Sequence record: PP496436.1
Direction: 5' to 3' (one strand)
Length of the DNA stretch: 64,000 nt
Shown here: one piece after another, positions 1 through 51,619 of the stretch
How the letters are laid out: each line of letters begins with the position of its first letter
Numbering within the stretch: position 1 is the stretch's first letter
Notes under the pieces: model-generated
What the model saw: only the letters and a program-made list of their open reading frames with translations
The model's database searches: none
What the model was told of the DNA's origin: nothing
Position numbers and translations under genes: made by a program

Positions 1-598
1 TGTAAGCCGACGACTGCAGAGCGGTTTCGACGTACATCGATTGGCCCAAGCCGTTGACCGCGCCTTGCAAGCGGGACACCTCGAACGACTCGACCAGCGC
101 GCCGTAGAAGTACACACGAATGCGGAACGGGTTGTACGAAGCAGTCTGCTTGGTGATACGGTCAATGATCACCGAGATGTTCGACGACCATACACCTGGG
201 CTCGATGCGTAGATCAAACCAGCATCATCCGCAGTGAACGGATACGACTCTGGGTCGTCCAGGTCTTGGCTCGGAACGCGAACGTCCTGATCCGAAGTGG
301 AGACCGGGATGATCAAGCCGCCAGCCAGCGTCTGTGAACCGGCGCGGATTACCCACAGCTTGTTGGAAGCCTGAAGGAATGTCGCGGCGGAATACATGGC
401 CAGGTCGGCACCAATACGGATACTGGAGTTCTCCGTATAACTTTGAATCAGATCCTGCTCGGAAGTCGTCAACTTCGCTTCTTCCTGCGACCCTCGCGGG
501 GCACCTGGAAGTACGATTGCGCCGTAAACGCCCGGCGAACTCGCAACAGAAGTCGCGAGATTGATTTCCGAGAGGGTTACCTTTGCTGCACCACTCAT
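1..598 (-). CDS. Tail sheath protein, N-terminal part (runs off window start)
   Basis: Hand translation from ATG at 598: MSGAAKVTLSEINLATSVASSPGVYGAIVLPGAPRG...YSAATFLQASNKLWVIRA. Matches the sheath N-terminus pattern (V.v.EiD.s...G.vG.a.rGp...ffl.g..lwVvR). Absent from the ORF track because it is truncated. Confidence 0.75.
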   Translation of the reverse strand, partial: MSGAAKVTLSEINLATSVASSPGVYGAIVLPGAPRGSQEEAKLTTSEQDLIQSYTENSSIRIGADLAMYSAATFLQASNKLWVIRAGSQTLAGGLIIPVSTSDQDVRVPSQDLDDPESYPFTADDAGLIYASSPGVWSSNISVIIDRITKQTASYNPFRIRVYFYGALVESFEVSRLQGAVNGLGQSMYVETALQSSAY

Positions 599-619
599 AG
601 TGATTCCCTCGATGGAGTG

Positions 620-808
620 TTAAGCCTGAACTTGTTCAGTAACCTTGCCCGGCAACGGGTAGGTCAACTGATCACGATCCAGACGTTTCAGGACGCCGAG
701 CGGCGGCAGGGTAACGGAATCTTTTCCCTCTGGACCATAGGCCAGCTGGATGGGGTGCTTCGCCGTCGAATACAGATTGACGTAAACTTTTTCTTGATCA
801 GACATCAC
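620..808 (-). CDS. Small hypothetical virion-module protein
   Basis: 61-62 aa ORF, co-oriented, directly upstream of the sheath gene; SD GGAG before ATG. Confidence 0.6.
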   Translation of the reverse strand: MMSDQEKVYVNLYSTAKHPIQLAYGPEGKDSVTLPPLGVLKRLDRDQLTYPLPGKVTEQVQA

Positions 809-823
809 ATCGTCTCCTAACCG

Positions 824-1510
824 TTATGGCGTCGGGGTCAGATCTATTTCCTTGCGGAACAGTACCTCGCCCTTACCGTTTTCACCTTCATCAAGCTGGG
901 CAACGAAGATAATCTTCGAGCTGTTCTTGAGCTTCGTGTCGTACTTGCCCCCATCACTGGAGACATAACCGTGGACAGTGATGTCTACGTTGAACACGAA
1001 CGCCGATACGTCCTGACCCGCCTTCGACTTGGGAGGCAATGTCAGGTCACCACCGACTTGAGACTCAATCGTGAACGGGATACCTCGGTACTCCAGCGTG
1101 AAATCCAGCAGGCTTAAATGCTGCATGAACTTCGCGTCACTGATGAACTTTAGCGCCTTCAGGTAATCGTCGGTAGCGAACTCCAGAACCATACCCATTG
1201 TAACCGGGATGATACTGATTGCGTACTCTCGATCCCCCTCGTTGATGGCAAAGCGATTAACAATCCCTCGCGCTGTCACATTGGGGCGGTGTCGATTGGA
1301 ATCACCTACGGTGCCGTAAGTCAGATAAGCGAAAGGGAACGTGGGTGCCTTTTCCCTTTTCTGAACGAACACATCGTAAGCTTCTTCCCGCGTTCGAATC
1401 ATGACGCTGCCTTTAGCTAGGTCCAGCCCTTCTTCGACACGACGGCATACACCCGCCAAGACGAACACCTCGATGGGCTTGATCCTTGTACTTGCTGAAG
1501 ACTTAGCCAT
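824..1510 (-). CDS. Putative neck/tail-completion structural protein
   Basis: 228 aa, SD GAGG; lies between major capsid and sheath genes. Function inferred from position. Confidence 0.5.
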   Translation of the reverse strand: MAKSSASTRIKPIEVFVLAGVCRRVEEGLDLAKGSVMIRTREEAYDVFVQKREKAPTFPFAYLTYGTVGDSNRHRPNVTARGIVNRFAINEGDREYAISIIPVTMGMVLEFATDDYLKALKFISDAKFMQHLSLLDFTLEYRGIPFTIESQVGGDLTLPPKSKAGQDVSAFVFNVDITVHGYVSSDGGKYDTKLKNSSKIIFVAQLDEGENGKGEVLFRKEIDLTPTP

Positions 1511-1521
1511 TTTCTACCTCG

Positions 1522-1558
1522 AAAAAAGGGTGGGTGGGCGGTAACACCCACCCACCCT
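1522..1558 (-). terminator. Rho-independent terminator after major capsid gene
   Basis: Minus strand AGGGTGGGTGGGTG-TTAC-CGCCCACCCACCC followed by a T-run. Confidence 0.85.
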
Positions 1559-1579
1559 ATATCACCTGACGTGCTGTGG

Positions 1580-2668
1580 TTACTGGCGGATAGCCTTGGT
1601 CACAGTGCGAGAGTTGATGATGGACATCGCGGTCAGCTGGCTCATGGTCCAACCACGACCTGGGAAGCGCTCGGTGGTCTCGTCGATAGGGCGAGCCTCG
1701 ATGCCATCACGGTCGGAGTACACACCATGGTTCTCTGGCGAGGAAACCACGTACATCTCGCCACGGCCCAGCACCTTGTGCTGCGAATGACGGAACTGGT
1801 CAGTGATCACTTCCAGGCCGTACACGTTGCCGATGTTGCCGGTTTGAATCAGCTCTTCGGCGTACGAGGTGGCGTTGAAAGTGTTGACCCAGCTTTCTTC
1901 GCTGATGATGTCGGTCAGGATGTCCGACGAGATCAACCAGAATGCCGCTGGCAGTCCCCACTGGGTGATGTTACTCACCATGTTGGCCAGAGCGCGGGTG
2001 GTCACTTGACCGGCGAGGATGGTCTGCTCGTTGGCTACGCCGACCGACGCATCGGCCAGACGTTTCCACAGGCGGTCTTCCGCAACCATGAACGCTTCCA
2101 GCGTGGAGATGTACGTACGGTCGAGCAGAGTGGCCGGGCCGCGAGCCAGGTCTTTCTGTTCGATGTACGGACGCGCCTGGAGGTAAAACTCTTGCGGGTA
2201 GTACACGTTGTCGCGAACCAGGTGGGTCGCAACTTGGGCAGGACCAGTCGAGAGGACCGCGACGGACTGCTTCATGTCCACGGTGACTTTCGGCTCTTGG
2301 CCTTGTTCCAGTTCCATGCGTTGCAGCAGACGACGTGCGAAGCCGTCACGGTTGCCGGTCACTTGCATCTCGGCGGCGAACACTTCGCCCAGTGCAACCA
2401 GCTCTTCCTTGCTGGCGAATGCGGCTTCAACCATCTCGCGCTTGCGAGCGGCAGCAGCCGAAGCAGTTTCAACCTGCTTCTCGGTGGTCAGCTGGTGACC
2501 ACTCTTGGCCGCAGCTGCGAGGGTCTGGAGCATGCCGAAAAGTTCTTTGTTCGAACTGGCGTTGAACTCGCCGTTCTGGCCAACCAGCTTACCGCCGCCT
2601 GCCATGGACAGTTCGGTGATGATGCTCGGACGGCTGACGGACAGCCCTTTAAGTTGCAATGCTTTCAT
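1580..2668 (-). CDS. Major capsid protein (HK97-fold, jumbo phage type)
   Basis: 362 aa; N-terminal arm, E-loop-like 'RRLLQRMELEQGQEPKV', and 'GNIGNVYGLEVITD' P-domain pattern; followed by a strong terminator; downstream of scaffold and decoration genes. Confidence 0.75.
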   Translation of the reverse strand: MKALQLKGLSVSRPSIITELSMAGGGKLVGQNGEFNASSNKELFGMLQTLAAAAKSGHQLTTEKQVETASAAAARKREMVEAAFASKEELVALGEVFAAEMQVTGNRDGFARRLLQRMELEQGQEPKVTVDMKQSVAVLSTGPAQVATHLVRDNVYYPQEFYLQARPYIEQKDLARGPATLLDRTYISTLEAFMVAEDRLWKRLADASVGVANEQTILAGQVTTRALANMVSNITQWGLPAAFWLISSDILTDIISEESWVNTFNATSYAEELIQTGNIGNVYGLEVITDQFRHSQHKVLGRGEMYVVSSPENHGVYSDRDGIEARPIDETTERFPGRGWTMSQLTAMSIINSRTVTKAIRQ

Positions 2669-2731
2669 GAGGTTTTAATCCTGTGCAGGAAAATCAGAAG
2701 ACCTTGTCTGTATTGATAAGGCTAACTAGCC

Positions 2732-3439
2732 TTACAGCAGGACCAGTTTCAGGAACGGATAGCCTTCATCCGGGCCTTTCAGAACAGCGACGCCTTGCAG
2801 CACGGTGCCGTTGCCACCGCTGGTGAACAGGCCGTTCGCGCCGAGGGTGACCACGGTCTCAGGGGACCAGTCAACGTTGGTGTCGAATTCGGAAGTCGCC
2901 AGCTCGCCTTTGGTGATGGCGGTGGTAATACCGAGGAAAGCAGCGGCGGTACGACCGGCAGACTGTTCGCCTTGCAGCGAGGCAGCTTCTACGACGGTCG
3001 GGGTGTAGCGATAGCCAGCCTGAATCGCTTGGTCTTTCTGTGCAGCGTTCAGCGTGACGGTCTTGCCGTCCGACCCGAGGCTGAACTTGCCAGCGGTGGC
3101 AGCATCACCAGCGGCCAGCGTGGTCTTCTGACCGTTGGCGGCGGTAGCTACCAGACGCAGCGAACCGGCGTCGGCGACAGCCTTGTCCAGCACCAGAGTA
3201 GTGCTGTTACGGTTGGCTTCGAAACCTTGCAGCTTCGGCAGGAAGTCCGGGAACTGGGTCTGGTTGATGTTGATGCCGAAGAAGCGCTCACCGGCAACAC
3301 CAGTGGAGGGCTTGACTGCCAACTCACCGTCAGCGCCGGTAGTGATAACCAGAGCGCAACCTTCGTTGGTCAATTCGATCCCTTCCGCCACTTGGACAGG
3401 TTGGGATTCGCGCAGATGAACGACGTCGAAACTGAGCAT
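2732..3439 (-). CDS. Putative head decoration/auxiliary capsid protein
   Basis: 235 aa, Ala/Gly/Thr-rich, SD GAGGA, immediately upstream of the MCP gene. Confidence 0.55.
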   Translation of the reverse strand: MLSFDVVHLRESQPVQVAEGIELTNEGCALVITTGADGELAVKPSTGVAGERFFGININQTQFPDFLPKLQGFEANRNSTTLVLDKAVADAGSLRLVATAANGQKTTLAAGDAATAGKFSLGSDGKTVTLNAAQKDQAIQAGYRYTPTVVEAASLQGEQSAGRTAAAFLGITTAITKGELATSEFDTNVDWSPETVVTLGANGLFTSGGNGTVLQGVAVLKGPDEGYPFLKLVLL

Positions 3440-5357: not shown

Positions 5358-5386
5358 TTGACAAACGCTGCCAGGCACCGTATACT
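5358..5386 (+). promoter_or_regulatory. Sigma70-type promoter
   Basis: TTGACA (5358-5363), 17 bp spacer, TATACT (5381-5386). Confidence 0.85.
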
Positions 5387-5956: not shown

Positions 5957-5996
5957 AAAATAAAACCCCACCGGTTCGCGCCGTGTGGGGTTTTTT
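5957..5996. terminator. Bidirectional intrinsic terminator between convergent genes
   Basis: AAAATAAAACCCCAC...GTGGGGTTTTTT, hairpin flanked by A-run and T-run. Confidence 0.8.
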
Positions 5997-6013
5997 GTGT
6001 CTGCGATTCAATC

Positions 6014-8800
6014 TTAGGCAAAGTCTTTCTGTGCCAGCACCAGTGGAACGCCGACAGTATCCAGTGCTATCTGGGTGAACTCCTTCAATTCTGATCTGGT
6101 CAGCTTCCGGCTCAGCATCACCCCATCGTGCTCTTGTGCCACCACGATGTCTTTGTGTCGCATGTTGAACTCTATCATCACCGCTTGCTCCATACCGCAG
6201 GTGATGAAGTGCAGCAGCTTCGACTTCTCCTTTTGTGTCGTCCATCCATTCAGCAGCTTGTCCGTATAGAAGAATGCAACTGACCCTAGAGCATTGCGTA
6301 CGCTCACTGCGCTGGCCGTCGCGTTGTCTGGATCAAGTCCAGCATCCTTGATTGATCTGGACAGCGACTTGTACAGGAAGTAGTTCTGCTTGGCGATCAG
6401 GTCTCGATTGACCGGCAGCTTGACGTGTTCAGTTACCTTGTAGTAAGGGTGCGCAAGGATCATGCTGGGCAATGCCTGCATCGTCCTTATCACAGGAAAG
6501 ATCAACCGGTTGGTGGTGTAGATCAAAGCTATTGCCAGCTCCATCATCTTAATCTTGAGGGCTTGCACGTGGCTCTCGTTCAACTCCAGTTCAATCGGCG
6601 CAACAAGACCACGGATCAGTTTGTCGATGGTGTCGGGCACCACGGAAGATTTCAGGATGGACTCATGCGATGTCTTGAGGCTAGACCCGTACATGACGGA
6701 CAGGAACATCAGCTTGCAGACTCCGTCGATAACCTGGATGAACTCCTTCTCCTTGCGCCACGTCTGGCCGGGCGTTTCCCCTGCGCTTTTCCATACCTGA
6801 TGCAGCGCTAGTCGGTCATTCCATCTTGACTCGCTTCCAGACCACTTCGGTGCACCGTATACCCCAGCTCTCCATGGGTTCCGTACCATGACCAGCGCCG
6901 ACTCCAGCAGGCCTTTGAACCCGGAGTCCTCCATCTCAGTCAGCACATGATCCGTCCACGTCTTGGATTCGTACATTCCGAAGATGGTCAACGCGCTATC
7001 CACATCCCGGTCCGTGAGGAACACCTTGCCGTACTCGTCTATCGTCTCGACCAGTTCCTTGTGATATTTCTTGACCAGTCCGCCGATCAGCATCGGGTGG
7101 CAAGACTTGACGTCGTAGTTGACGTACCCACTCTTGGTGAGGATCACCTGCTTGAGTTGATTGGGCAGCGAACCGAAACCCACTGGAGAGTTTATCCGGG
7201 GCGAGCGCAAGGTGGTGAAGTGATGTGCACGGTGCATGACTATCTGGTTGTGGCGGTCGCTGCTCCCTTGCTGGCACCCCAAGTTCTCCGGATTGATCAT
7301 GCGGGCCAACGTGCGGAAGGCACCGGAGGATATGGCGTCACCCGAGGTGTGGTGCATCCAGCTCAGTTCCGCCAGCAGGTCGTTGACGGGTAAGCGTACA
7401 CTCTTGGTGGACAGCATGCGGATGTAGGCCTTTACGTTGACCGGTACAACTGGCCGGGTCGAAAGGTTTATGTTGTCACTGATCTCCTTGTACGTCGGGT
7501 TGTTCACCACACAAGACTGAACCATTGAGACTCGGCGCATCATCGTGCACGCCTTGATCGGCACCTTCTTGTCGTGGAACATGTATAGCTTGCCCGGCTG
7601 GCCGGTGAGGTTGTCGTTCGCCACCAGAGACTCGCCGTAGGGCAGCTGAGAACTGAATACCATTACGGCCTGCCCACGCTCGGCGAACGCATAGATCGCA
7701 TTGGGCAGTACCCGGTTGCTACCCTTCAGATTGGTCAGCCAGCGGCCCAACGGTTTCACGTCACGAGGCCGACCCATCAACCGCCCATGTAGGTAGGCGT
7801 CAACCTTATCCATGTACGAGTCAACGAACTGGGTGACCACGGGACCGGGTTCGAACGTGAACGTCTTGTGCTTCCAGTAGTCTGCCTCCGTGGTCACGGC
7901 CATCAGCCCCATGATCTCCAGCACAGCGCGCACGGTGTCCCAGTGATAAGACGTCTGACCCTTCTTCGATCCTTCGATGTTCCGCCAGTTGATCAGGTTG
8001 TTGAACCTCTTTTCACCTTGATGCGAGCCGAGCCCGTAGCCTTCCTTGACCTGATCCTTCTTGATCGCGAACTGGGTATCGTGGCTGTGATCCAGATCAA
8101 CATGCAGGAACCGGGATACAGACCGAGCATGGTTCAGTTCCATGGGGAACGCCAGCTTGTTGGTCAGGTCCTTGGGGTTGAACGCAGGGTTCCATTGAAA
8201 GCCGTCCTTCGAGGTTCCCTTGTGCACGGCGGACACCAGATGTCGGGCCATTGAGTCGCGGGAGTCGAAGTGGCCTTTGTCGTTCACCTTATCCAGCAGC
8301 ATGGGGTACGCCACGACAAGGCGAGCGATCAGGAAGGCAAAGCAGTAGGCAGCAGACGGGCCGGGCGCACAGTTGCGCTCCGCCATCTTCTGGAGGAATG
8401 TCTCGTACTGATCAAGGATGAAGTAGCCCAGACCGGGCGTGACGGCGACCGGCAGGCCAACGACGCGGCTGTCCAGCCAGCTCTTGCCACTGGGGTACAG
8501 GTTGTGCTTGGGATTCAGCGAAGGTTCAACCACCATCATCCGCACGTAGGGCACATGGGCCTGAACCCATTCAACGTTGGATTGGTCTTTGGCTTCGGGG
8601 AAGTCACGGGTAGCTTCACCCACCTTGGCGATGAGATCAGTATTGAACCGCCCTACATCCTTGACCTCGGGGGCCAGCGTAGGGTTCAACCGGGCGGTAG
8701 CCTTGATGATGGGTACTTGGTCATACACTGGATACAAGTCTAGGGGCTTGGACAGTATGCCTGCATATTCCTTTTCCGAGAGTGGGGTGTAATCAGCCAT
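6014..8800 (-). CDS. Large protein with C-terminal family-A-polymerase-like domain
   Basis: 928 aa; motif A-like 'YVNYDVKSCHPMLI', motif B-like 'KLMFLSVMYG', 'CGMEQAVM', motif C-like 'QEHDGVML'. No ExoI motif recognised. Confidence 0.5.
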   Translation of the reverse strand: MADYTPLSEKEYAGILSKPLDLYPVYDQVPIIKATARLNPTLAPEVKDVGRFNTDLIAKVGEATRDFPEAKDQSNVEWVQAHVPYVRMMVVEPSLNPKHNLYPSGKSWLDSRVVGLPVAVTPGLGYFILDQYETFLQKMAERNCAPGPSAAYCFAFLIARLVVAYPMLLDKVNDKGHFDSRDSMARHLVSAVHKGTSKDGFQWNPAFNPKDLTNKLAFPMELNHARSVSRFLHVDLDHSHDTQFAIKKDQVKEGYGLGSHQGEKRFNNLINWRNIEGSKKGQTSYHWDTVRAVLEIMGLMAVTTEADYWKHKTFTFEPGPVVTQFVDSYMDKVDAYLHGRLMGRPRDVKPLGRWLTNLKGSNRVLPNAIYAFAERGQAVMVFSSQLPYGESLVANDNLTGQPGKLYMFHDKKVPIKACTMMRRVSMVQSCVVNNPTYKEISDNINLSTRPVVPVNVKAYIRMLSTKSVRLPVNDLLAELSWMHHTSGDAISSGAFRTLARMINPENLGCQQGSSDRHNQIVMHRAHHFTTLRSPRINSPVGFGSLPNQLKQVILTKSGYVNYDVKSCHPMLIGGLVKKYHKELVETIDEYGKVFLTDRDVDSALTIFGMYESKTWTDHVLTEMEDSGFKGLLESALVMVRNPWRAGVYGAPKWSGSESRWNDRLALHQVWKSAGETPGQTWRKEKEFIQVIDGVCKLMFLSVMYGSSLKTSHESILKSSVVPDTIDKLIRGLVAPIELELNESHVQALKIKMMELAIALIYTTNRLIFPVIRTMQALPSMILAHPYYKVTEHVKLPVNRDLIAKQNYFLYKSLSRSIKDAGLDPDNATASAVSVRNALGSVAFFYTDKLLNGWTTQKEKSKLLHFITCGMEQAVMIEFNMRHKDIVVAQEHDGVMLSRKLTRSELKEFTQIALDTVGVPLVLAQKDFA

Positions 8801-9627
8801 TGGATAGCTCGCGTATTACCGGAGTGAATGGAATTGGACGTTATCAGCCCATTTACCAGACTATATACAGAGTATCTTATGGGGGTTAAAAAGGACCATC
8901 TTGCAATTATTTGGGTCATTAATTCCCTTTCATACCCTAAACCTCTATCTGTGAATACGGGGGTAGTTAGCCCTAGATACATCCCTATTACCTGTGTATA
9001 TTGCCCATGTAGACTCTATTCCCCTATCGGGAAGTATAACCTCGAAAAAGGTTCCTAGCTTGCATGGGCTGGCCCACCCACCCCCGTGGCCCACCCGACC
9101 GCCCGGTTAAGGCCATACCTAGGGATTCCTTTCTCCCAGAGGGACCCCCAGCCGCCCATCCTTCCCCTGCTCCTCCCTTTCCTTCATCATCTACACCCAC
9201 CCAGCTATTGACTTACCATCTAGTGATCCTCCTTCCTCCAGCTTCTACATAGGCAGTTAGTTTCCCCATGCCTCTAAGTCCCTACGCTTCATCATGCACT
9301 TATGCTCTGTAGTACTGATTCCCCCACATGCCCGTGACTTATGCTCTGGTGTCAGTATTCCCAGCCTCCCAGGTGAAAAGGGTGACCCGGCTTCCTGCTA
9401 TGGGTATGGGGTTGTCCGGGGAATAGCGCCCGTGAATAGGGCTTCCAGGCGTGCGATATGGGGAGTTTTTCGGGGATGGATGAGTCAGTATGGCGGGGAA
9501 TGGGGAATGTAGCGCCTGCGAGCTTGTAGGAGCCCGTGGTTATTGACTGGATATGCGGGACTGGGGCGGGGGTTTCCTGCGGAGGTGAAAAAGCCCGCAC
9601 GGCTTGGGACCGATACGGGCTCTGGTA
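8801..9627. other. Long non-coding region with C-rich to G-rich switch (candidate replication origin)
   Basis: No credible ORF; C-rich plus strand ~9060-9370, G-rich ~9380-9580; 12-bp direct repeat ACTTATGCTCTG at 9298 and 9337. Confidence 0.4.
9586..9622 (-). terminator. Intrinsic terminator ending the accessory gene block
   Basis: Minus strand GAGCCCGTAT...GTGCGGGCTTTTTCACC. Confidence 0.65.
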
Positions 9628-9918
9628 TTACTTGACGTACTCGGGATGTCTCACTTGCGGGTGACACACGAAGTCAATGGACTGCACGGGTAAGATGAGT
9701 GGCACCGTACCCTTATACTTGCGGATCAGCTGGGCGTATATCTCACCGTCCCACTTGCCCAGCTCATTCGCTTGACTAACTCTCTCATCTAGGGAGAGCC
9801 GGGTTGCCGCTGACCAGCAGTCTGACTTGGCTGTGGGTCCGTCGAACGTCTGGATCGGCGTGTAGCCGTTGTGCAACGCGGTGAAGACCGCGAGCATCAG
9901 GAAGTAACCCGTGTTCAT
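9628..9918 (-). CDS. Hypothetical protein
   Basis: 96 aa, hydrophobic N-terminus, start overlaps the upstream stop (ATGA). Confidence 0.6.
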   Translation of the reverse strand: MNTGYFLMLAVFTALHNGYTPIQTFDGPTAKSDCWSAATRLSLDERVSQANELGKWDGEIYAQLIRKYKGTVPLILPVQSIDFVCHPQVRHPEYVK

Positions 9919-10754
9919 TTTAGTATCTCGATAGGTGGCTTCTTGGCGTTGGGGTTCGGACGGGGTTTACTGTCAGGGTTCAGGGTCGCCGGTTCCCTCC
10001 ATTCGTACCTCGCCGGTCTTTCCTCTGTGCCCACGGTGTCGTCACCCGGCAATTCATCTATCAGCTTGTAGTAGCCAGTGGCCTGATCAATCGTGGGTTC
10101 CACATAGATCTTGGTGTGGATGGCCCCTTGCCTACTGACACATAACCTGCGAATGACCGGGTGTTCCTTAGTGCCGAACCTCGGCCCTCCAACCAGACTG
10201 GCTGTGTAATACGTCGGCCCCTCCGGTGGAATCTCTACGTATGTGCCGGGTACGTTCCCGTGATATAGCGGGGGATTAGTCTGCGTGCTGCCCGGCGTCA
10301 CCGCATCTGGTCCGTCCGGCGTGCCTTTCATCTTCATGCGATACACGCGGATCATCTCATGCAGTTCGCCGCCCGGCTTTAACGCGTCTGGGTCATCCGC
10401 GTGAATGAAGGCCAGCATGTCGATAGCGTCTACTTCAAAGCCTATCGCCTCAAACGGGATCAGCTGGAACTCCTGATACACGCCGGGGATCGGATCTTGC
10501 GGTCGGTACAACGCGACCACTCTTCCTTTGCCCGGCTCGACGCCGAGTACGCTTTCGTCTCGACCCACCCACATCTCACGTGATCCCGGCACACTAGCTG
10601 GCACGTGTTCGATAGTACCTTTCGGGTAGTGCGCGTTGAACGTGGCAGTGAAGCACCGCAGGTTGCCCTTGTAGCAGCGGAACGGTTTGGTCTCTCTGGC
10701 GTGGCGGGTCAGTGGGTTGCTCAATGGTGTAGATTGTTTGACGATCAGGCTCAT
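9915..10754 (-). CDS. Hypothetical protein
   Basis: 279 aa, SD GAGGA, CCACTACCC leader motif. Confidence 0.7.
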   Translation of the reverse strand: MSLIVKQSTPLSNPLTRHARETKPFRCYKGNLRCFTATFNAHYPKGTIEHVPASVPGSREMWVGRDESVLGVEPGKGRVVALYRPQDPIPGVYQEFQLIPFEAIGFEVDAIDMLAFIHADDPDALKPGGELHEMIRVYRMKMKGTPDGPDAVTPGSTQTNPPLYHGNVPGTYVEIPPEGPTYYTASLVGGPRFGTKEHPVIRRLCVSRQGAIHTKIYVEPTIDQATGYYKLIDELPGDDTVGTEERPARYEWREPATLNPDSKPRPNPNAKKPPIEILK

Positions 10755-10790
10755 GGTGTATGTTCCTCTTCGGGGTAGTGGGTGCTGCGG

Positions 10791-11111
10791 TTAGTCGTTG
10801 AACTCTGCTGGATCGAAGCCGAAACGTTCGCACCAGTCCCGGCGGCGCTCTACAATTTCACGTGCCTGCTCTTTGGAGTAGATGGCACAGCGGATCAGAT
10901 CACGGATATCCCCCATGCGCTTCCACATGTGGAACCCTTGATAGAAATCATCAAGTGCCTGCGTGTGTTCCTTGATCAGCGACGTGATGTGGAAAGACGG
11001 TTGGGTCAGCTTCATCAGCTCGGCGTGGTCTTTCGCGAACTGGGCCAGCTTGTTGCTCACCCAGATGTCGGCTTTGACTTGCAGCAGGGCGTAGTTGGTG
11101 TCAGTGTTCAT
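10791..11111 (-). CDS. Hypothetical helical protein
   Basis: Start MNTDTN at 11111 with SD GAGGT. Confidence 0.65.
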   Translation of the reverse strand: MNTDTNYALLQVKADIWVSNKLAQFAKDHAELMKLTQPSFHITSLIKEHTQALDDFYQGFHMWKRMGDIRDLIRCAIYSKEQAREIVERRRDWCERFGFDPAEFND

Positions 11112-11135
11112 GGTGTACCTCATTGGGGTAGTGGA

Positions 11136-11669
11136 TTATTTCTTCATGCCTTGGCGCACGAACGTGAGTGGTTCGAAGGGTGGTCTCTCAAACCACGATA
11201 CGGGGTTTGCTCTCTCCAATCCGGCACGCCACCCCAGATAAAAACTGGCGGTGACGATGGACTGACGACGGTTAGTTATCTCGATCCTTCCAGTTGCCAT
11301 CAGCGTCTTGATGTCCACGAAACCCGTACGCTCGACCTCGATGTCAACTTTGCTCCAGTGCTCCTTCGTCTTAGCGAAGTCGGATACAGCTTTCGGTTTG
11401 AACAATTTCTTGTCGGTGAAATACACGACGGGGTTGGTGATCTTACCCAGTGCACGGTCTGAGCGGCTGGTGTGATACCAAGCCTCATGAACTACGCTGG
11501 CAATGTCTCCCACCCCGATACGCGCAGCCAGGCATTGCCATACGGTCGGGGCAAAGCACACACGCAGCGTCTCAGCGCATTCGTCGCGGTTCCTGCCGAT
11601 TGGCACCTTGGCCTTCAGGATGACGTGCTTGCCTAGATCTTTCACGGACACGTGATAAAAGCGGGGCAT
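11136..11669 (-). CDS. Hypothetical protein, possible ADP-ribosyltransferase-like fold
   Basis: 177 aa; 'FYHVS', 'RVCFAPT', 'KEHW' spaced like ART H-S/T-E elements (weak). Confidence 0.35.
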   Translation of the reverse strand: MPRFYHVSVKDLGKHVILKAKVPIGRNRDECAETLRVCFAPTVWQCLAARIGVGDIASVVHEAWYHTSRSDRALGKITNPVVYFTDKKLFKPKAVSDFAKTKEHWSKVDIEVERTGFVDIKTLMATGRIEITNRRQSIVTASFYLGWRAGLERANPVSWFERPPFEPLTFVRQGMKK

Positions 11670-11716
11670 GGTGTGGCTTCCTATTGGACAGTGGGGCGGC
11701 AGTGTGCCGCACGTGC

Positions 11717-11746
11717 ATGATATCAGATGGGAACCATGGGTGTCAA
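11717..11746 (-). promoter_or_regulatory. Sigma70-type promoter
   Basis: Minus strand TTGACA-18 bp-TATCAT upstream of the 11669 start. Confidence 0.7.
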
Positions 11747-11764
11747 CACCCGACCGACGCAGGT

Positions 11765-11800
11765 GAAAAAGCCCACGCAGCGGCTAGGCAGGTGGGCTTG
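11765..11800 (-). terminator. Intrinsic terminator
   Basis: Minus strand AAGCCCACC...CGTGGGCTTTTTCACC; shares AGGTGAAAAAGCCC with the 9586 terminator. Confidence 0.65.
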
Positions 11801-11803
11801 AGG

Positions 11804-12094
11804 TCAAACGAGCTTCAATACTGGCCTTGGTTTTTCACCTACGTCAACGGACGCATGTAGTTCCAGATCAAGTGCGAGCCGTATTAAGTCCGAGTAGGGC
11901 TCTCGTGAGTGTGCCCAAACGTCTGGCAGTGTCGTGCGGTAGACGTGGACAACCGTGTGCAGCTCTTCCTTGGCGTAAACACCTGCCCGCATCAACTGAG
12001 TAACCCGTGCACGCACCTTGGGTGTGATCCACGTGATCAGATCCTCATACGTTCCGGTCCAGATCATCACCTGATGATTAACGCGCTTCGCCAC
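11804..12094 (-). CDS. Hypothetical protein
   Basis: 96 aa, GTG start with SD GAGGT. Confidence 0.6.
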   Translation of the reverse strand: MAKRVNHQVMIWTGTYEDLITWITPKVRARVTQLMRAGVYAKEELHTVVHVYRTTLPDVWAHSREPYSDLIRLALDLELHASVDVGEKPRPVLKLV

Positions 12095-15509: not shown

Positions 15510-16172
15510 TCAAAACAAACTGTTCTTCGGTACACGTTGCGTCAATGCCTGCAATTCATCAAACGTAAATTGGAACCACTCATGATCTCCGGATACCAGA
15601 CTATCCGTGGGCTTGGCCTTCTTAGCCTGCTTCAAGATCAGCTTTCGCTGTTCCCCGGCCAGCACATCTGCCCGTTCATTCCCTACGTTGCCTTTGTGAC
15701 CACGCACCCATGACACCTTGGCATTGGTCTTCTCTTTCAACGCTTTGGCACATAACCATAGGTCGAAGTTGGCGACTGCCTCTCCATTAGCTTTGAGCCC
15801 ACCTCGACGCATCCAGCCATCCAGATGATCAGTGAATCCCTTCTGCACGTATTGGCTGTCGGTTATCACCTGAACGGGTCGTGGCACTTGCCCGAAGATC
15901 TGTCGGTGCAGCATGTTGTAGCGGAAGGCGTCAGCCATAGCTGCAATAACACCTGACAGTTCCATGCGTGAGATCGTGGTGTCGTTGTATCCGGCGGCAC
16001 GGTGACTGACCTCCAATACGTTAGTCAGGTCATTGAACTGTGCACGCAGTGGAGATAACACGGGGGCATTCAGGTCCACCATGCGGACAGCAGCCCAACC
16101 GCCAATACGGTCTTTCGATCCACAAGACCCATCGGTGTAGTACGTCAACGGTATGTTCTTCTTGCCACGCAT
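15510..16172 (-). CDS. rnhA: Ribonuclease HI
   Basis: 'YTDGSC', 'SRMELSGVI', 'VITDSQYV', 'WVRGHKGNVGNERADVLA' = all RNase HI catalytic motifs. Confidence 0.93.
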   Translation of the reverse strand: MRGKKNIPLTYYTDGSCGSKDRIGGWAAVRMVDLNAPVLSPLRAQFNDLTNVLEVSHRAAGYNDTTISRMELSGVIAAMADAFRYNMLHRQIFGQVPRPVQVITDSQYVQKGFTDHLDGWMRRGGLKANGEAVANFDLWLCAKALKEKTNAKVSWVRGHKGNVGNERADVLAGEQRKLILKQAKKAKPTDSLVSGDHEWFQFTFDELQALTQRVPKNSLF

Positions 16173-23854: not shown

Positions 23855-24844
23855 ATGGCCCTTTCAACCTGGCCGCTGACCGAAGGTGAACTCGGTCAGG
23901 GCCTCGTCAACGAACTGAATCGTACCAGCAAGGCGCTGGTGAACCGGAGTATGTGGTCTTTGCCATTGCTCCGGCGTTTGTTTTATCGGCGCACCGAGAT
24001 TGGTGTCCCGGAGCTACTCCACGTCTGTACCAGCATTCATCGGGGCAAGACTTACTTCTGCCTGTTGGTGAACTTCCGAGACGTGGTGATGGGCAATCCC
24101 GACCAGTATGGCTGGGATCTGGCGGGCCGCTGGTTGTTCTACGACGTTGACCTGCTGGACACCCCGCCGTTCAAAGCGGTGAAGAAGTCCATTGAGTCCC
24201 GTGCCACCAAGACCGAAGTGTCGTACGGTCAGGCTTTCCTCCCTTACGAGAAGAGTGATGAGGAATACGTCAAGTCCCTCAAGGGCAACTACAAGCCCCA
24301 CATCTTCGGCGAGAAGTCCAAGCAGTATCGCGTCTTATCGTACTTCGGGCTGGCAGCGGTAGCCCCCTTCGCTCAAGCTCTGATGTGCTTCGGCATTCAG
24401 CGCGCCGAAAGGTTTATGGCCGAAGGGCAGAACGATGTCCTCCCCGAGTTGTACGACCTGCCACTGCAACTGGCGGGGCTCGGCAATGTCTCGAACACCC
24501 GCATCGGCTGCGTGACCATTGAAGTCGAAGGTACGATGGTAGGTGCTATCAGCATGTATGCTCAAGGTGCACTGGGCGACGCGGACATGCTGTATCTGCA
24601 CGAGATCCTCATCGACCCGGACCCCAAGTGGAAGAGCTTGTCGCTGGCTACTCTGCTGCACATTCATGCCGTCCTGTACTATCGCCGATCCCTCCAGAAA
24701 GACATAGTGTTCAACCTGGGCTATAACTTCGCCGATGGGTATCAAGGTTACAAGGATGTCTTCCGTCCCAACGCCAACGCCTTCAACGTGTACACCGAGA
24801 TGGACACCGAGCCCGGCGTACCACTGTCCTGTTTCAAGGGGTAA
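23855..24844 (+). CDS. Fem/Acetyltransf_6-like GNAT-fold protein 1
   Basis: C-terminal 'LATLLHIHAVLYY...FNLGY...GYKDVF' resembles the Fem/BioF2-like F(D/N)xG...YK.xF tail. Confidence 0.5.
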   Translation: MALSTWPLTEGELGQGLVNELNRTSKALVNRSMWSLPLLRRLFYRRTEIGVPELLHVCTSIHRGKTYFCLLVNFRDVVMGNPDQYGWDLAGRWLFYDVDLLDTPPFKAVKKSIESRATKTEVSYGQAFLPYEKSDEEYVKSLKGNYKPHIFGEKSKQYRVLSYFGLAAVAPFAQALMCFGIQRAERFMAEGQNDVLPELYDLPLQLAGLGNVSNTRIGCVTIEVEGTMVGAISMYAQGALGDADMLYLHEILIDPDPKWKSLSLATLLHIHAVLYYRRSLQKDIVFNLGYNFADGYQGYKDVFRPNANAFNVYTEMDTEPGVPLSCFKG

Positions 24845-24847
24845 GAC

Positions 24848-25849
24848 ATGTACACTCCGTATTCCCAAAACAGCCTTATGCAGTCGATCCCTCTGGATGA
24901 CCAAGGTACATTCGCCCATCCACCGTACACGATGGAAGGAGAGTTCACCGACGTGTGGACGAATCCCAGCCTGTACGGGTTTGTTAGCTTGTTGAACGGT
25001 CAGAGCAATAGCCGGGCATATCGAGACTGGATGACCACCCACAATCTTCCAGCCCTGTTCCTCGGTCCGCACCATGAAGACAACTTCTGGTTTGAATTCA
25101 GCACTGGTCTCGATTCCAACTGCACGCTGGATTACAACGAGATCAACGTCCAAGGCAACCTGCAGGACTTCCTTGGGAGATTGACGTCATCTCGCCGTCG
25201 CTCCGTGCTCAAGGCAAAGGAAACGGATACAATGATCCACAAGGCAGGCTCGGTAGCCAACTTCAACCTGTATCATCCGGTAGAGGGTAGGCTGTATAGT
25301 CTGACCGTGATTCACGAACGCCGGGTGATGAAAGATATTTCCGAGTTTATCGAATCGAAACTCTGGAGTATGAAGCATACGCCTACTGACCTCACGTACG
25401 GTGCATTCACCACTCTGATGGACTACATCCGGTTGAAGCAGCGAGATGACACGCCGCTGGGCCACCGGTTGCGCAACGTACAGCTCTTGGTTATCCGAGA
25501 TGAACGCTCCGGGTTTATCGTGTCGGTACACCTGGTGGCGATCACCACGTTGAAAGATGAGTCCATGAACCCCATCAAGACGTACATGCACTCCTTCGCA
25601 CGCATCACTGTTCTCCCTGCACGCATCGCCTTACTTGCGTTGATCAAGGCGGTTCAAGAGTTAAACGTCACCAGTCAGTATGCGTCCCGTGCACTGGCGA
25701 AGATCGACTATCTTGATGTGAGCAACGTGGTGCTGTCCGAGCGAGAGCAGTACAAGTCGGACTTCTTCACCGGCAAATGCCAAGTGCGTGCGTGGGCATC
25801 CCCGGCGCTGCTGGAACGGCAGTTACCTTTCGTCACGCCGATCCCGTAA
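24848..25849 (+). CDS. Fem/Acetyltransf_6-like GNAT-fold protein 2
   Basis: 'LQDFLGRLTSSRRRSVLKA' and C-terminal 'DYLDVS...QYKSDF'. Confidence 0.5.
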   Translation: MYTPYSQNSLMQSIPLDDQGTFAHPPYTMEGEFTDVWTNPSLYGFVSLLNGQSNSRAYRDWMTTHNLPALFLGPHHEDNFWFEFSTGLDSNCTLDYNEINVQGNLQDFLGRLTSSRRRSVLKAKETDTMIHKAGSVANFNLYHPVEGRLYSLTVIHERRVMKDISEFIESKLWSMKHTPTDLTYGAFTTLMDYIRLKQRDDTPLGHRLRNVQLLVIRDERSGFIVSVHLVAITTLKDESMNPIKTYMHSFARITVLPARIALLALIKAVQELNVTSQYASRALAKIDYLDVSNVVLSEREQYKSDFFTGKCQVRAWASPALLERQLPFVTPIP

Positions 25850-50673: not shown

Positions 50674-51332
50674 ATATATTCTTCGTCCACGCTGATCCTG
50701 TTATTGCCGCAAGCATGCTCTGCGACCAGCATGTGACCAAGATGATCACCGAGTCAATCCAGATGCTGTGTACGGCGCACCGATGGTTCGGTAACGAAGA
50801 TATGCCGTATGCCTCGATGAACCCGAACCATCGGTGCAACATCTGGGTCCGGGAGTCCACTGAGAACTATCGGTGGTTATGGCGGCACGCCCATGCGCTG
50901 GCGCTGGTGGCAGCGTCCCGATACGGGGCTGTACGCTCGCAGGCGGTGACTTTGTTGTCCCGACTGATCGATGCCCCGGCTGGCGTCGATCGCGGCGCCT
51001 TGACGATCCCAGCGGCTGCTATAAGTGAGCCGCCCGGTTCCCCAATCCCACCGGAGTACTTGCAAGCATGGCGGGAGAGTGTGGTGTGCTTCGAGTCTGC
51101 CGTCGTTGCTTATCGCCAATTCTATATTCAACAGAAGTCGACATTCGCACGCTGGTCTGGATCGGCACCCGCATGGTATATCCAAGGTTTGCGGCAGTAC
51201 AGACTTATGCACCGACTTCGTGAACGAGACCCTAAGCTACCGTGGCCGCGAGGTATGACTAAACCCGATACCCGTCTGCAGTTCCGGTCGCACCCTACCC
51301 TAAGTGATTGGAGGCACTTCCCTAATGAATAA
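50670..51332 (+). CDS. Pyrimidine-dimer DNA glycosylase/endonuclease V family protein
   Basis: 'MNIFFVHADPVIAASMLCDQHVTKMITESIQML', 'NHRCNIWVRES..NYRWL', 'YRQFY'. Confidence 0.8.
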   Translation: MNIFFVHADPVIAASMLCDQHVTKMITESIQMLCTAHRWFGNEDMPYASMNPNHRCNIWVRESTENYRWLWRHAHALALVAASRYGAVRSQAVTLLSRLIDAPAGVDRGALTIPAAAISEPPGSPIPPEYLQAWRESVVCFESAVVAYRQFYIQQKSTFARWSGSAPAWYIQGLRQYRLMHRLRERDPKLPWPRGMTKPDTRLQFRSHPTLSDWRHFPNE

Positions 51333-51343
51333 GAGGATCTTGT

Positions 51344-51619
51344 ATGACGACCCCATTGACTGACTCTGAACTTCAGATGCTGGTTACGGCTGCACGTGAT
51401 CAGATGGCTGACGTGATCACCCGACACTTGCGCACCGTACTGCTACCCCAGCATACCGGAACAGAGGCGGAACAAGCTCGTATCGTGGCAGAGGATTCCG
51501 GTATTGATCTTATCCAGCTGGTGTTCCTGCTGAATGGAGATTCGGCCAAGCTGTCCACGCACAAGCTGCTTGAGATCGCCATCCGCTTGCGGCTGCGTCC
51601 CGTGTTCACCCTGACCTGA
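51344..51619 (+). CDS. XRE/HigA-like helix-turn-helix protein
   Basis: 'VAEDSGIDLIQLVFLLNGDSAKLSTHKLLEIAIRLRL' resembles HTH_37 (A..lGi.q..vs.ll.Gk..kfS.dkL...a..lG). Confidence 0.55.
   Translation: MTTPLTDSELQMLVTAARDQMADVITRHLRTVLLPQHTGTEAEQARIVAEDSGIDLIQLVFLLNGDSAKLSTHKLLEIAIRLRLRPVFTLT

Follow-up and report, generated by a model that had tools for sequence, protein, structure and literature searches.

A non-coding block holding both GC-skew extremes of the genome beside an orphan gene of Pseudomonas phage vB_PpuM-Illi-2, probably a start site for DNA copying or a control region

At the RNA II origin of ColE1 and at the T4 origins oriF (uvsY) and oriG (34), a G-rich RNA lies over a C-rich template beside easily melted AT-rich DNA, and an RNase H and a polymerase of the Pol I family are both at hand. 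Iteron rep-ori cassettes (lambda O/ori, P1 RepA/oriR, and T4 oriE with repEB) have direct repeats in or beside an AT-rich segment, are present in single copy, and adjoin a gene that diverges together with them. To our knowledge, hardly any replication origin or long regulatory region has been mapped in jumbo phages. Here, we describe a block of 827 nucleotides (nt), at positions 8801–9627, that resembles both kinds of system in part. It lies in the final 64 kb of the genome of Pseudomonas phage vB_PpuM-Illi-2 (PP496436; 201,178 bp), whose host is Pseudomonas putida. These 64 kb are called the window, and positions are given in it unless a record coordinate is stated (window coordinate = record coordinate minus 137,178, which puts the block at about 146 kb of the record). 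Phages of the Illi-2 type make up the "G3" group of jumbo myoviruses of P. putida, which was described as a new genus in a paper that makes no mention of the block region (bioRxiv 10.1101/2024.03.26.586772). A look-up of public sequencing runs for this DNA listed none. Our results showed that the block is a real, statistically striking, and undescribed non-coding element. It is probably either a start site for DNA copying or the control region of the gene directly downstream, which encodes an orphan protein of 928 amino acids (aa; 6014–8800, minus strand). The form of this reading that we tentatively put forward, as a possibility, is that of a single-copy, non-coding cis-acting element tied to the 928-aa gene, which would be of the origin type and overlap the promoter region of the gene.

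A preliminary description of this DNA had reported about 830 bp without a credible gene, and this was borne out. No gene is annotated in the block in any of nine related phage records, and its small open reading frames (ORFs) are broken in sister phages. An alignment of eight phages shows 1-nt indels in those of 62, 72, and 82 aa, the 76-aa ORF at 8828–9058 (plus strand) contains a stop codon in Aura and SKa-4, and a 58-aa ORF on the minus strand is frameshifted in SKa-4 and Amme-1. A protein-coding gene was rejected because of these interruptions. At 827 nt, the block is the largest annotated gap in the 201-kb genome, which we count in favor of a cis-acting element. The next two gaps measure 670 nt (window 50674–51344, record 187852–188521) and 594 nt (record 24722–25315); their composition is not extreme and they gave no Rfam match.

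The block had also been singled out for its composition, and on the scale of the 201-kb genome this lies far beyond chance. Runs of three or more G reach 18 per 400 nt (genome mean 4.2, standard deviation [sd] 2.1) and those of three or more C number 22 over the same length (mean 4.5, sd 2.3); these are the highest values in the genome. With windows of 300 nt, the lowest GC skew anywhere in the genome (−0.46, at about 9073) and the highest (+0.37, at about 9403) stand only 330 nt apart. The former belongs to a C-run-rich tract at 9060–9370 of the plus strand, G/A-rich on the minus strand (the sense strand of the 928-aa gene), and the latter to a G-run-rich tract at 9385–9580 of the plus strand, which is C-rich and G-poor on the gene-sense strand. 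G-tracts reported earlier were confirmed at 9402–9421, 9496–9506, and 9559–9574. Next to the gene, an AT-rich segment (8803–9003) has a GC content of 0.40 versus 0.55 for the genome; it is the fourth most AT-rich site and falls in the lowest 0.3% of 200-nt windows. The presence of the two skew extremes side by side, together with a top AT-rich site, argues for an origin-type element.

Such an element could work along the lines of ColE1 or T4 oriF/oriG. An AT-rich segment bearing TAGRG repeats (8935–9026) would be the part that binds protein and unwinds. From the G/C-skewed flanking tracts, G-rich transcripts would remain hybridized to the C-rich template as R-loops, those of the minus strand possibly stabilized by two G-quadruplex (G4) motifs. 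The hybrid, once processed by RNase HI, would then prime the Pol I-type DNA polymerase of the phage. The 928-aa protein, in which motifs like those of family-A polymerases can be seen, would be the cognate partner of the element.

Both enzymes that this scheme calls for are encoded by the phage, which we count in its favor. The DNA polymerase belongs to family A (Pol I type; PF00476, E 8.6e-40). The gene labeled "RNaseH" (15510–16172, minus strand) encodes a true type 1 RNase HI (PF00075, E 2.5e-26) and not a flap nuclease of the T4 type. The right half of the block passes a simplified QmRLFS-type rule for R-loop formation at 9402–9505, for rightward transcription (plus sense), and this is one of only two such sites in the genome, a further point in favor. 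A candidate rightward promoter (8974–9002, plus strand) lies 400–600 nt from the G-rich tract, to be compared with the RNA II of ColE1, which is about 555 nt long. Canonical G4 motifs, defined as G3+ with loops of 1–7, occur at 9073–9104 and 9135–9177, both on the minus strand inside the C-rich part; these are two of the three found in the 201-kb genome when both strands are counted, and they too support an origin of this type. The preliminary description had linked G-quadruplexes to the G-tracts; the G-tract region of the plus strand contains no such canonical motif. Lytic origins of herpesviruses (EBV oriLyt) offer a similar picture, in that a G-rich transcribed tract with G4-associated R-loops flanks the viral origin (PMC12203722), although these are eukaryotic viruses with different proteins and the analogy is one of mechanism only. 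Unlike the ColE1 and T4 origins, the block has no clear promoter, and its skewed tracts are far longer and mirror each other on the two strands. T4 origins, by comparison, are short (a promoter and an unwinding element of about 50 bp) and AT-rich.

The likeness to iteron cassettes comes from six TAGRG repeats, mostly ATAGGG or ATAGAG, on the minus strand at 8935–9026, that is, six in 92 nt within the AT-rich segment. Their density (6 per 250 nt, genome mean 0.18, sd 0.46) is the genome maximum and was counted for an origin. The block also contains two 26-nt direct repeats (9298–9323 and 9337–9362) spaced 39 nt apart; ACTTATGCTCTG was confirmed at 9298 and 9337. They are unique in the genome, which again favors a single-copy cis-acting element, and nearly invariant in all nine phages. 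A role for them as a general phage promoter was rejected, no further copies being present in the genome even with 2–3 mismatches. The RNA of 9298–9362 does not fold significantly (z +0.15).

Conservation beside the 928-aa gene in relatives had been suggested as a check in the preliminary description. Eight sister phages retain the whole block at 95–100% identity (100% in Lauda), and gaps precede a remote homologue of the gene in Vibrio phages. Within the block, 9061–9237 is 100% identical in SKa-4 and KoPa-5. The 928-aa gene itself is a divergence hot spot, with a nucleotide identity to SKa-4 of 92.9%. Phage Peetri, which is 75–92% identical to Illi-2 along the backbone, retains only 9238–9627 of the block (89.5%). 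Right of about 9238 its identity is backbone-like (84–92%, and about 92% over 9385–9580). Left of a mosaic junction at 9230–9245, as given by the limits of blastn matches, and as far as about 6213 inside the 928-aa gene, Peetri has a divergent allele, whose protein is 31% (tblastn) to 38% (phmmer) identical to that of Illi-2. Since this divergence takes in the gene as well as the proximal half of the block, the two form one exchangeable cassette. The diverged half of Peetri nevertheless holds both skew extremes of its 50-kb neighborhood, 13 GGA per 150 nt, and five TAGRG repeats; judged by this comparison, Peetri retains the character of the sequence and not the sequence itself. Joint divergence of the gene and the proximal half with a kept composition counts for an element tied to the gene, and a role of the 928-aa protein as cognate partner would explain their joint exchange.

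More distant relatives show a comparable arrangement. The nearest capsid relatives outside the genus are the Vibrio coralliilyticus phages GR7B and GR11A (capsid 54% identical), in which the local gene order is kept and gaps of 750 and 1086 nt, respectively, precede an orphan gene of 618/617 aa. This protein aligns end to end with the last 71 columns of an Illi-2/Peetri profile (35% identity, P 0.0085), and the strings NYD(I/V)xS, K-x7-[YF]G, EHDG, and a C-terminal FA are common to both. The Vibrio orphan gene stands within the replication module with RNase HI directly behind it, and on the gene-sense strand the GR11A gap passes from a C-skew to a strong G-skew (+0.59 to +0.78 per 100 nt); both observations support an origin. 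The GR7B gap has the C-skew and an AT-rich repeat region, with little G-skew. Each Vibrio gap contains about 10 TAGAC/TAGAG/TAGAT motifs. ACAGATAGG, TTTAGRG, TGCAAAAG, and a T-run are found in all four phage types in front of the homologous gene; since they are not arranged in the same order relative to the G-rich tract from phage to phage, they are suggestive only. Neither the gene nor the gap is present in phiRSL1. A bolder proposal, which we consider unlikely, is that the block and the 928-aa gene together would make up a new kind of replication cassette, without a described counterpart in jumbo phages. The cassette would combine an R-loop-prone, G/C-skewed origin, short TAGRG iterons, and a fast-evolving, highly divergent family-A-like polymerase or initiator that would recognize this origin; it would be exchanged as a unit (Illi-2 versus Peetri) and its outline would be conserved from Pseudomonas to Vibrio phages, with RNase HI in the same operon in the latter.

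Several results weigh against an origin at this place. The C-left/G-right polarity of the block had been taken in the preliminary description as that expected at a bidirectional origin. However, the cumulative GC skew is flat over the 201 kb (about −60 to +278 counts) and does not inflect at the block. Skew on the scale of the genome is seen for AT only, in a V-shaped curve with a minimum at about 157 kb of the record (window about 19.9 kb) and a maximum at about 66 kb, which coincide exactly with divergent and convergent switches of gene orientation; this minimum and the divergence point of gene orientation are 11 kb from the block. Genome-wide GC skew was therefore rejected as evidence, the curve being flat and the block not being a genome-scale skew minimum; the argument fails under the refuting condition that the preliminary description had itself set. 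The origin proposed on that reasoning is still the leading candidate, on other grounds, namely the iterons, the R-loop tract, the linked gene, and the RNase HI and polymerase genes. Within the block, the G-rich tract of the minus strand does not pass the R-loop rule of 40% G, and no promoter of recognizable strength leads into the skewed tracts, the sole rightward candidate being a 9/12 match. Unlike those of iteron rep-ori cassettes, the TAGRG repeats are only 5–7 nt long and irregularly spaced (intervals of 8, 31, 12, 28, and 8 nt), five sister phages do not conserve one of the six, and the putative partner has no recognizable initiator domain.

The comparative argument has to be qualified in the same direction. 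Over 8801–9399, the block is 98–99% identical versus 80–85% at third codon positions of the adjacent 928-aa gene, and strong purifying selection was first inferred from this. The inference was weakened by the genome background, itself 92–99.75% identical (the median window is 99.75% identical between SKa-4 and Illi-2, and coding DNA of KoPa-5 is 92.2% identical). Other intergenic gaps are 92–100% identical, which places the block only in the upper range of the ordinary. Physical linkage alone could account for the joint divergence in Peetri. As for the guanines, the phage encodes QueC, QueE, and GTP cyclohydrolase, and because of these genes a 7-deazaguanine derivative probably replaces guanine in its DNA; at modified sites, formation of G4 by the DNA would therefore be prevented.

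The proposed partner protein is likewise a difficulty. Polymerase-like motifs can be picked out by eye in the 928-aa protein (D563; K696..Y704-G; H891-D892; C-terminal DFA), which are conserved in Peetri and in the Vibrio homologues, and language-model leads point from it to DNA_pol_A, with confidence that is fairly high in both cases yet was rated as weak. No Pfam match to PF00476 or PF00940 was found, hhalign comparisons with T7 RNA polymerase, T7 DNA polymerase, and the polymerase of the phage itself yielded non-significant E values (0.15–0.58), and AlphaFold models had a pLDDT of 30 and 51, with nothing retrieved by Foldseek. By these profile and fold tests, none of them significant, the polymerase likeness of the protein is a resemblance of motifs only. 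Sequence and profile searches also gave no match in Pfam, PHROG, or PDB, and among 1.8 billion representatives the relatives of the protein were limited to its own cluster and the allele of Peetri. Searches of IMG/VR with two DNA patterns, with the ATPase, and with the capsid protein returned nothing, nor did scanning metagenomes with the alignment of the protein. The only further relative found for the orphan family, of no known function, is a 446-aa protein from IMG/VR (IMGVR_UViG_3300025451_000033, 1841–3181), which is 22% identical to the GR7B protein over the C-terminal 240 residues of the latter; its gene lies on a 36-kb viral contig with a divergent gap of 246 nt upstream.

If an origin tied to the orphan gene is present here, it would define a new family of initiators and show how replication starts in a phage that probably carries modified guanines. 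Should the block instead turn out to be a two-way stop for transcription or a sponge RNA, it would exemplify such a natural part with unusual clarity. The element is easy to test, as the phage is cultured and grows on the laboratory strain P. putida KT2440/PaW85, and the simple signature given by its pattern lends itself to searches of other phages.

A control of transcription alone can be argued from the right end of the block, where an intrinsic terminator, T1 (9581–9623, minus strand), closes the leftward early/replication operon. This operon runs from the divergence point at 157.1 kb of the record via a helicase, RNase H, and many small genes to a hypothetical gene of 96 aa (9628–9918, minus strand). 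T1 starts 5 nt past the stop codon of the latter and consists of a hairpin and a U5 run, with CACCTCC after them. Its folding energy on the minus strand is −22.1 kcal/mol (z −3.54; none of 200 shuffles was as stable), compared to z +0.34 on the plus strand; T1 is a strong, strand-specific intrinsic terminator. Its tail motif TTTTTCACCT occurs six times in the genome, in five cases in sense orientation downstream of genes. Conservation of T1 is complete (100%) in SKa-4 and KoPa-5 and reaches 97.8% in Peetri. AGGTGAAAA, reported as a direct repeat, was confirmed at 9371 and 9583, with the correction that the copy at 9583 is the tail of this minus-strand terminator motif, which recurs elsewhere in the genome. 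The stretch at 9371–9393 is a degenerate copy of the 3′ half of T1, 74% identical to 9583–9605 (D1 repeat).

According to this alternative, T1 would stop transcription, zones for Rho loading would follow on both strands, and the TAGRG repeats would be operators that, with weak promoters, time the 928-aa gene, with no role in replication. The C-rich, G-poor RNA after T1 would catch read-through, and the mirror C-rich tract would catch antisense transcripts. The position fits well: the block is flanked on both sides by minus-strand genes and stands exactly between the early/replication operon and the orphan gene, beyond which lie a reversed small gene and the late structural module with the ATPase, capsid, and sheath genes. 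So does the strength and strand specificity of T1. The strongest C>G regions of the genome, one per strand, are both in the block, and a transcript entering from either side is C-rich and G-poor over 200–300 nt. This makes for untranslated RNA of at least 80 nt on each strand as predicted for a Rho-dependent terminator, and it neatly explains the mirror polarity, every incoming transcript starting C-rich. Rut sites such as lambda tR1 and bidirectional terminator zones present the same C-rich, G-poor untranslated RNA of at least 80 nt after the end of an operon; the block differs in being much longer and in being flanked already by strong intrinsic terminators, and any part played by Rho is putative.

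The promoter-like sites speak to the same question. Two weak sigma-70-like matches on the minus strand (8889 to 8860 and 8933 to 8906) point to the 928-aa gene and, together with the one at 8974–9002, which is directed rightward into the skewed tracts, give three 9/12 matches versus 0.9 (sd 1.0) in shuffles. Promoter-like sites 60–130 nt upstream of the ATG are what a control region would need, as is the recurrence of motif strings upstream of the homologous gene in four phage types. However, none of the matches in the block reaches the level of at least 10/12, and the clear early promoters are all in other gaps. Neither a strong sigma-70 promoter nor one of the GCTAATT type is present, which counts for an origin and against a purely transcriptional role, as the recognizable promoter types of the phage are absent. 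Moreover, T1 and a second terminator at about 5960–6000 would already halt most incoming transcription, which makes a back-up of 500 nt seem excessive; 600 nt is very long for an operator region; and the 26-nt repeats, the G4 motifs, and the GGA density kept in Peetri are left without a role. On this balance, we regard purely transcriptional control as a serious but doubtful explanation. The second terminator is strong and bidirectional (z −2.9 on the plus strand and −2.0 on the minus strand) and occupies an 87-nt gap between the 928-aa gene and a small convergent plus-strand gene. The ATG of the 928-aa gene is not preceded by a Shine-Dalgarno sequence, whereas most late genes have GAGGAA sites.

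The GGA content of the block raises the question of an RNA product. A GGA-dense purine tract at 9110–9283 (minus strand) resembles an array of Shine-Dalgarno or Rsm-binding motifs, and at 12 per 150 nt (genome mean 2.5, sd 1.6) it is the top non-coding site. One or more minus-strand non-coding RNAs (ncRNAs) could act as a GGA-rich sponge for RsmA/RsmE (CsrA family) or for ribosomes, and thereby free ribosome-binding sites of the GAGGAA type. The density equals that of Rsm sponge RNAs and is kept in Peetri despite the divergence, the GAGGAA-type sites of late genes contain the RsmA motif, and the tract is non-coding yet nearly invariant, as the identity over 9061–9237 illustrates. RsmY, RsmZ, and CsrB share the very high density of GGA or A(N)GGA, here in a non-coding region of a genome infecting Pseudomonas; unlike in these RNAs, the motifs of the block lie in unbroken purine runs and not in hairpin loops, neither a promoter nor a terminator was found that would mark off an RNA of suitable size (100–350 nt), and Rfam gives no match.

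With Rfam 15, the region 8000–10500 gave nothing at E ≤ 1, Rsm families included, except for a chance JUMPstart match inside the 928-aa gene, and the whole genome gave nothing at the gathering score. No tRNA or tmRNA was found in the block. Its fold energies are like those of shuffles (z −0.22 and +1.58), with no excess stability on either strand, and compensatory pairs number 1 and 0 on the two strands, a test of low power as the aligned sequences are 89–100% identical. Pairing of the C-rich with the G-rich half into a long hairpin or cruciform was discarded, being no better than within-arm shuffles (z −0.42 to +0.85). The structured ncRNA mentioned in the preliminary description thus found no support in Rfam, fold z-scores, or covariation, with sequences too similar for exclusion. 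In addition, GR7B lacks the G-rich tract, and a composition rich in G and A may by itself account for the GGA density. We found no published report of a phage Rsm/CsrA or ribosome sponge of this kind; a Grad-seq study of phiKZ lists phage ncRNAs, none of them of the sponge kind (PMC8545117). Taken together, an RNA product appears rather improbable.

The genes to the right of T1 introduce another alternative. In window 9628–11500, small genes vary between sister phages: Illi-2, Aura, and SKa-4 have genes of 96 aa and 279 aa, and Amme-1, Pori-4, Voja-6, KoPa-5, and Peetri have others. T1 and the last 25 nt or so before it are kept despite these differences, which therefore mark a boundary of module swaps. 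The block could then be a spacer or recombination boundary without sequence-specific function, a relic of lost genes and duplicated terminator pieces that provides homology for such swaps. The D1 repeat, the mosaic junction at about 9238, the constancy of T1 and the right half next to variable genes, and a conservation within the range of other intergenic regions are all compatible with this. Decayed DNA, however, would drift to an average composition rather than hold both skew extremes and the densest repeat cluster. The unusual composition is kept in the diverged allele of Peetri and partly in GR11A, and no conserved gene remnant was found in any of the six frames. We therefore hold a functionless spacer to be improbable.

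A packaging (pac) or terminal site, also named in the preliminary description, would agree with single-copy, repeat-containing non-coding DNA. It found no support: the terminase genes are at 76–3127 of the record, about 55 kb away across the record ends, and these ends lie elsewhere than the block. Such a site is very improbable here.

Further features of the block and its surroundings were noted. A hypervariable patch at 9384–9413 (alignment columns 646–676) carries an 11-nt indel between sister phages and shows no significant fold (z +0.57). A 12-nt inverted repeat (9002–9013 and 9244–9255) was set aside, being at chance level (about one expected by our own estimate) and absent in Peetri. 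To the right, a gap of 408 nt (window 11670–12077) contains copies of the terminator motif placed back to back on both strands, along with a strong sigma-70 promoter on the minus strand; no other intergenic gap in the comparison is less conserved in Peetri (71% identity).

Elsewhere in Illi-2, thirteen near-consensus sigma-70 promoters (TTGACA, 16–18 nt, CATAAT-like, at least 10/12) were detected, most of them intergenic and aimed at the next gene. Examples in the window are at 5358–5386 (plus strand), about 11746 (minus strand), and about 15465 (minus strand). Given this placement, these are probably early promoters for the host RNA polymerase. The heptamer GCTAATT occurs in eight copies, at record positions 3123, 9785, 14966, and 19955 (plus strand) and 157145, 132292, 111695, and 97411 (minus strand). 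It is always oriented as the local genes and in most cases precedes a start codon by 40–125 nt; a sigma factor is among the proteins encoded by the phage, and GCTAATT is a candidate element of a phage-specific promoter class.

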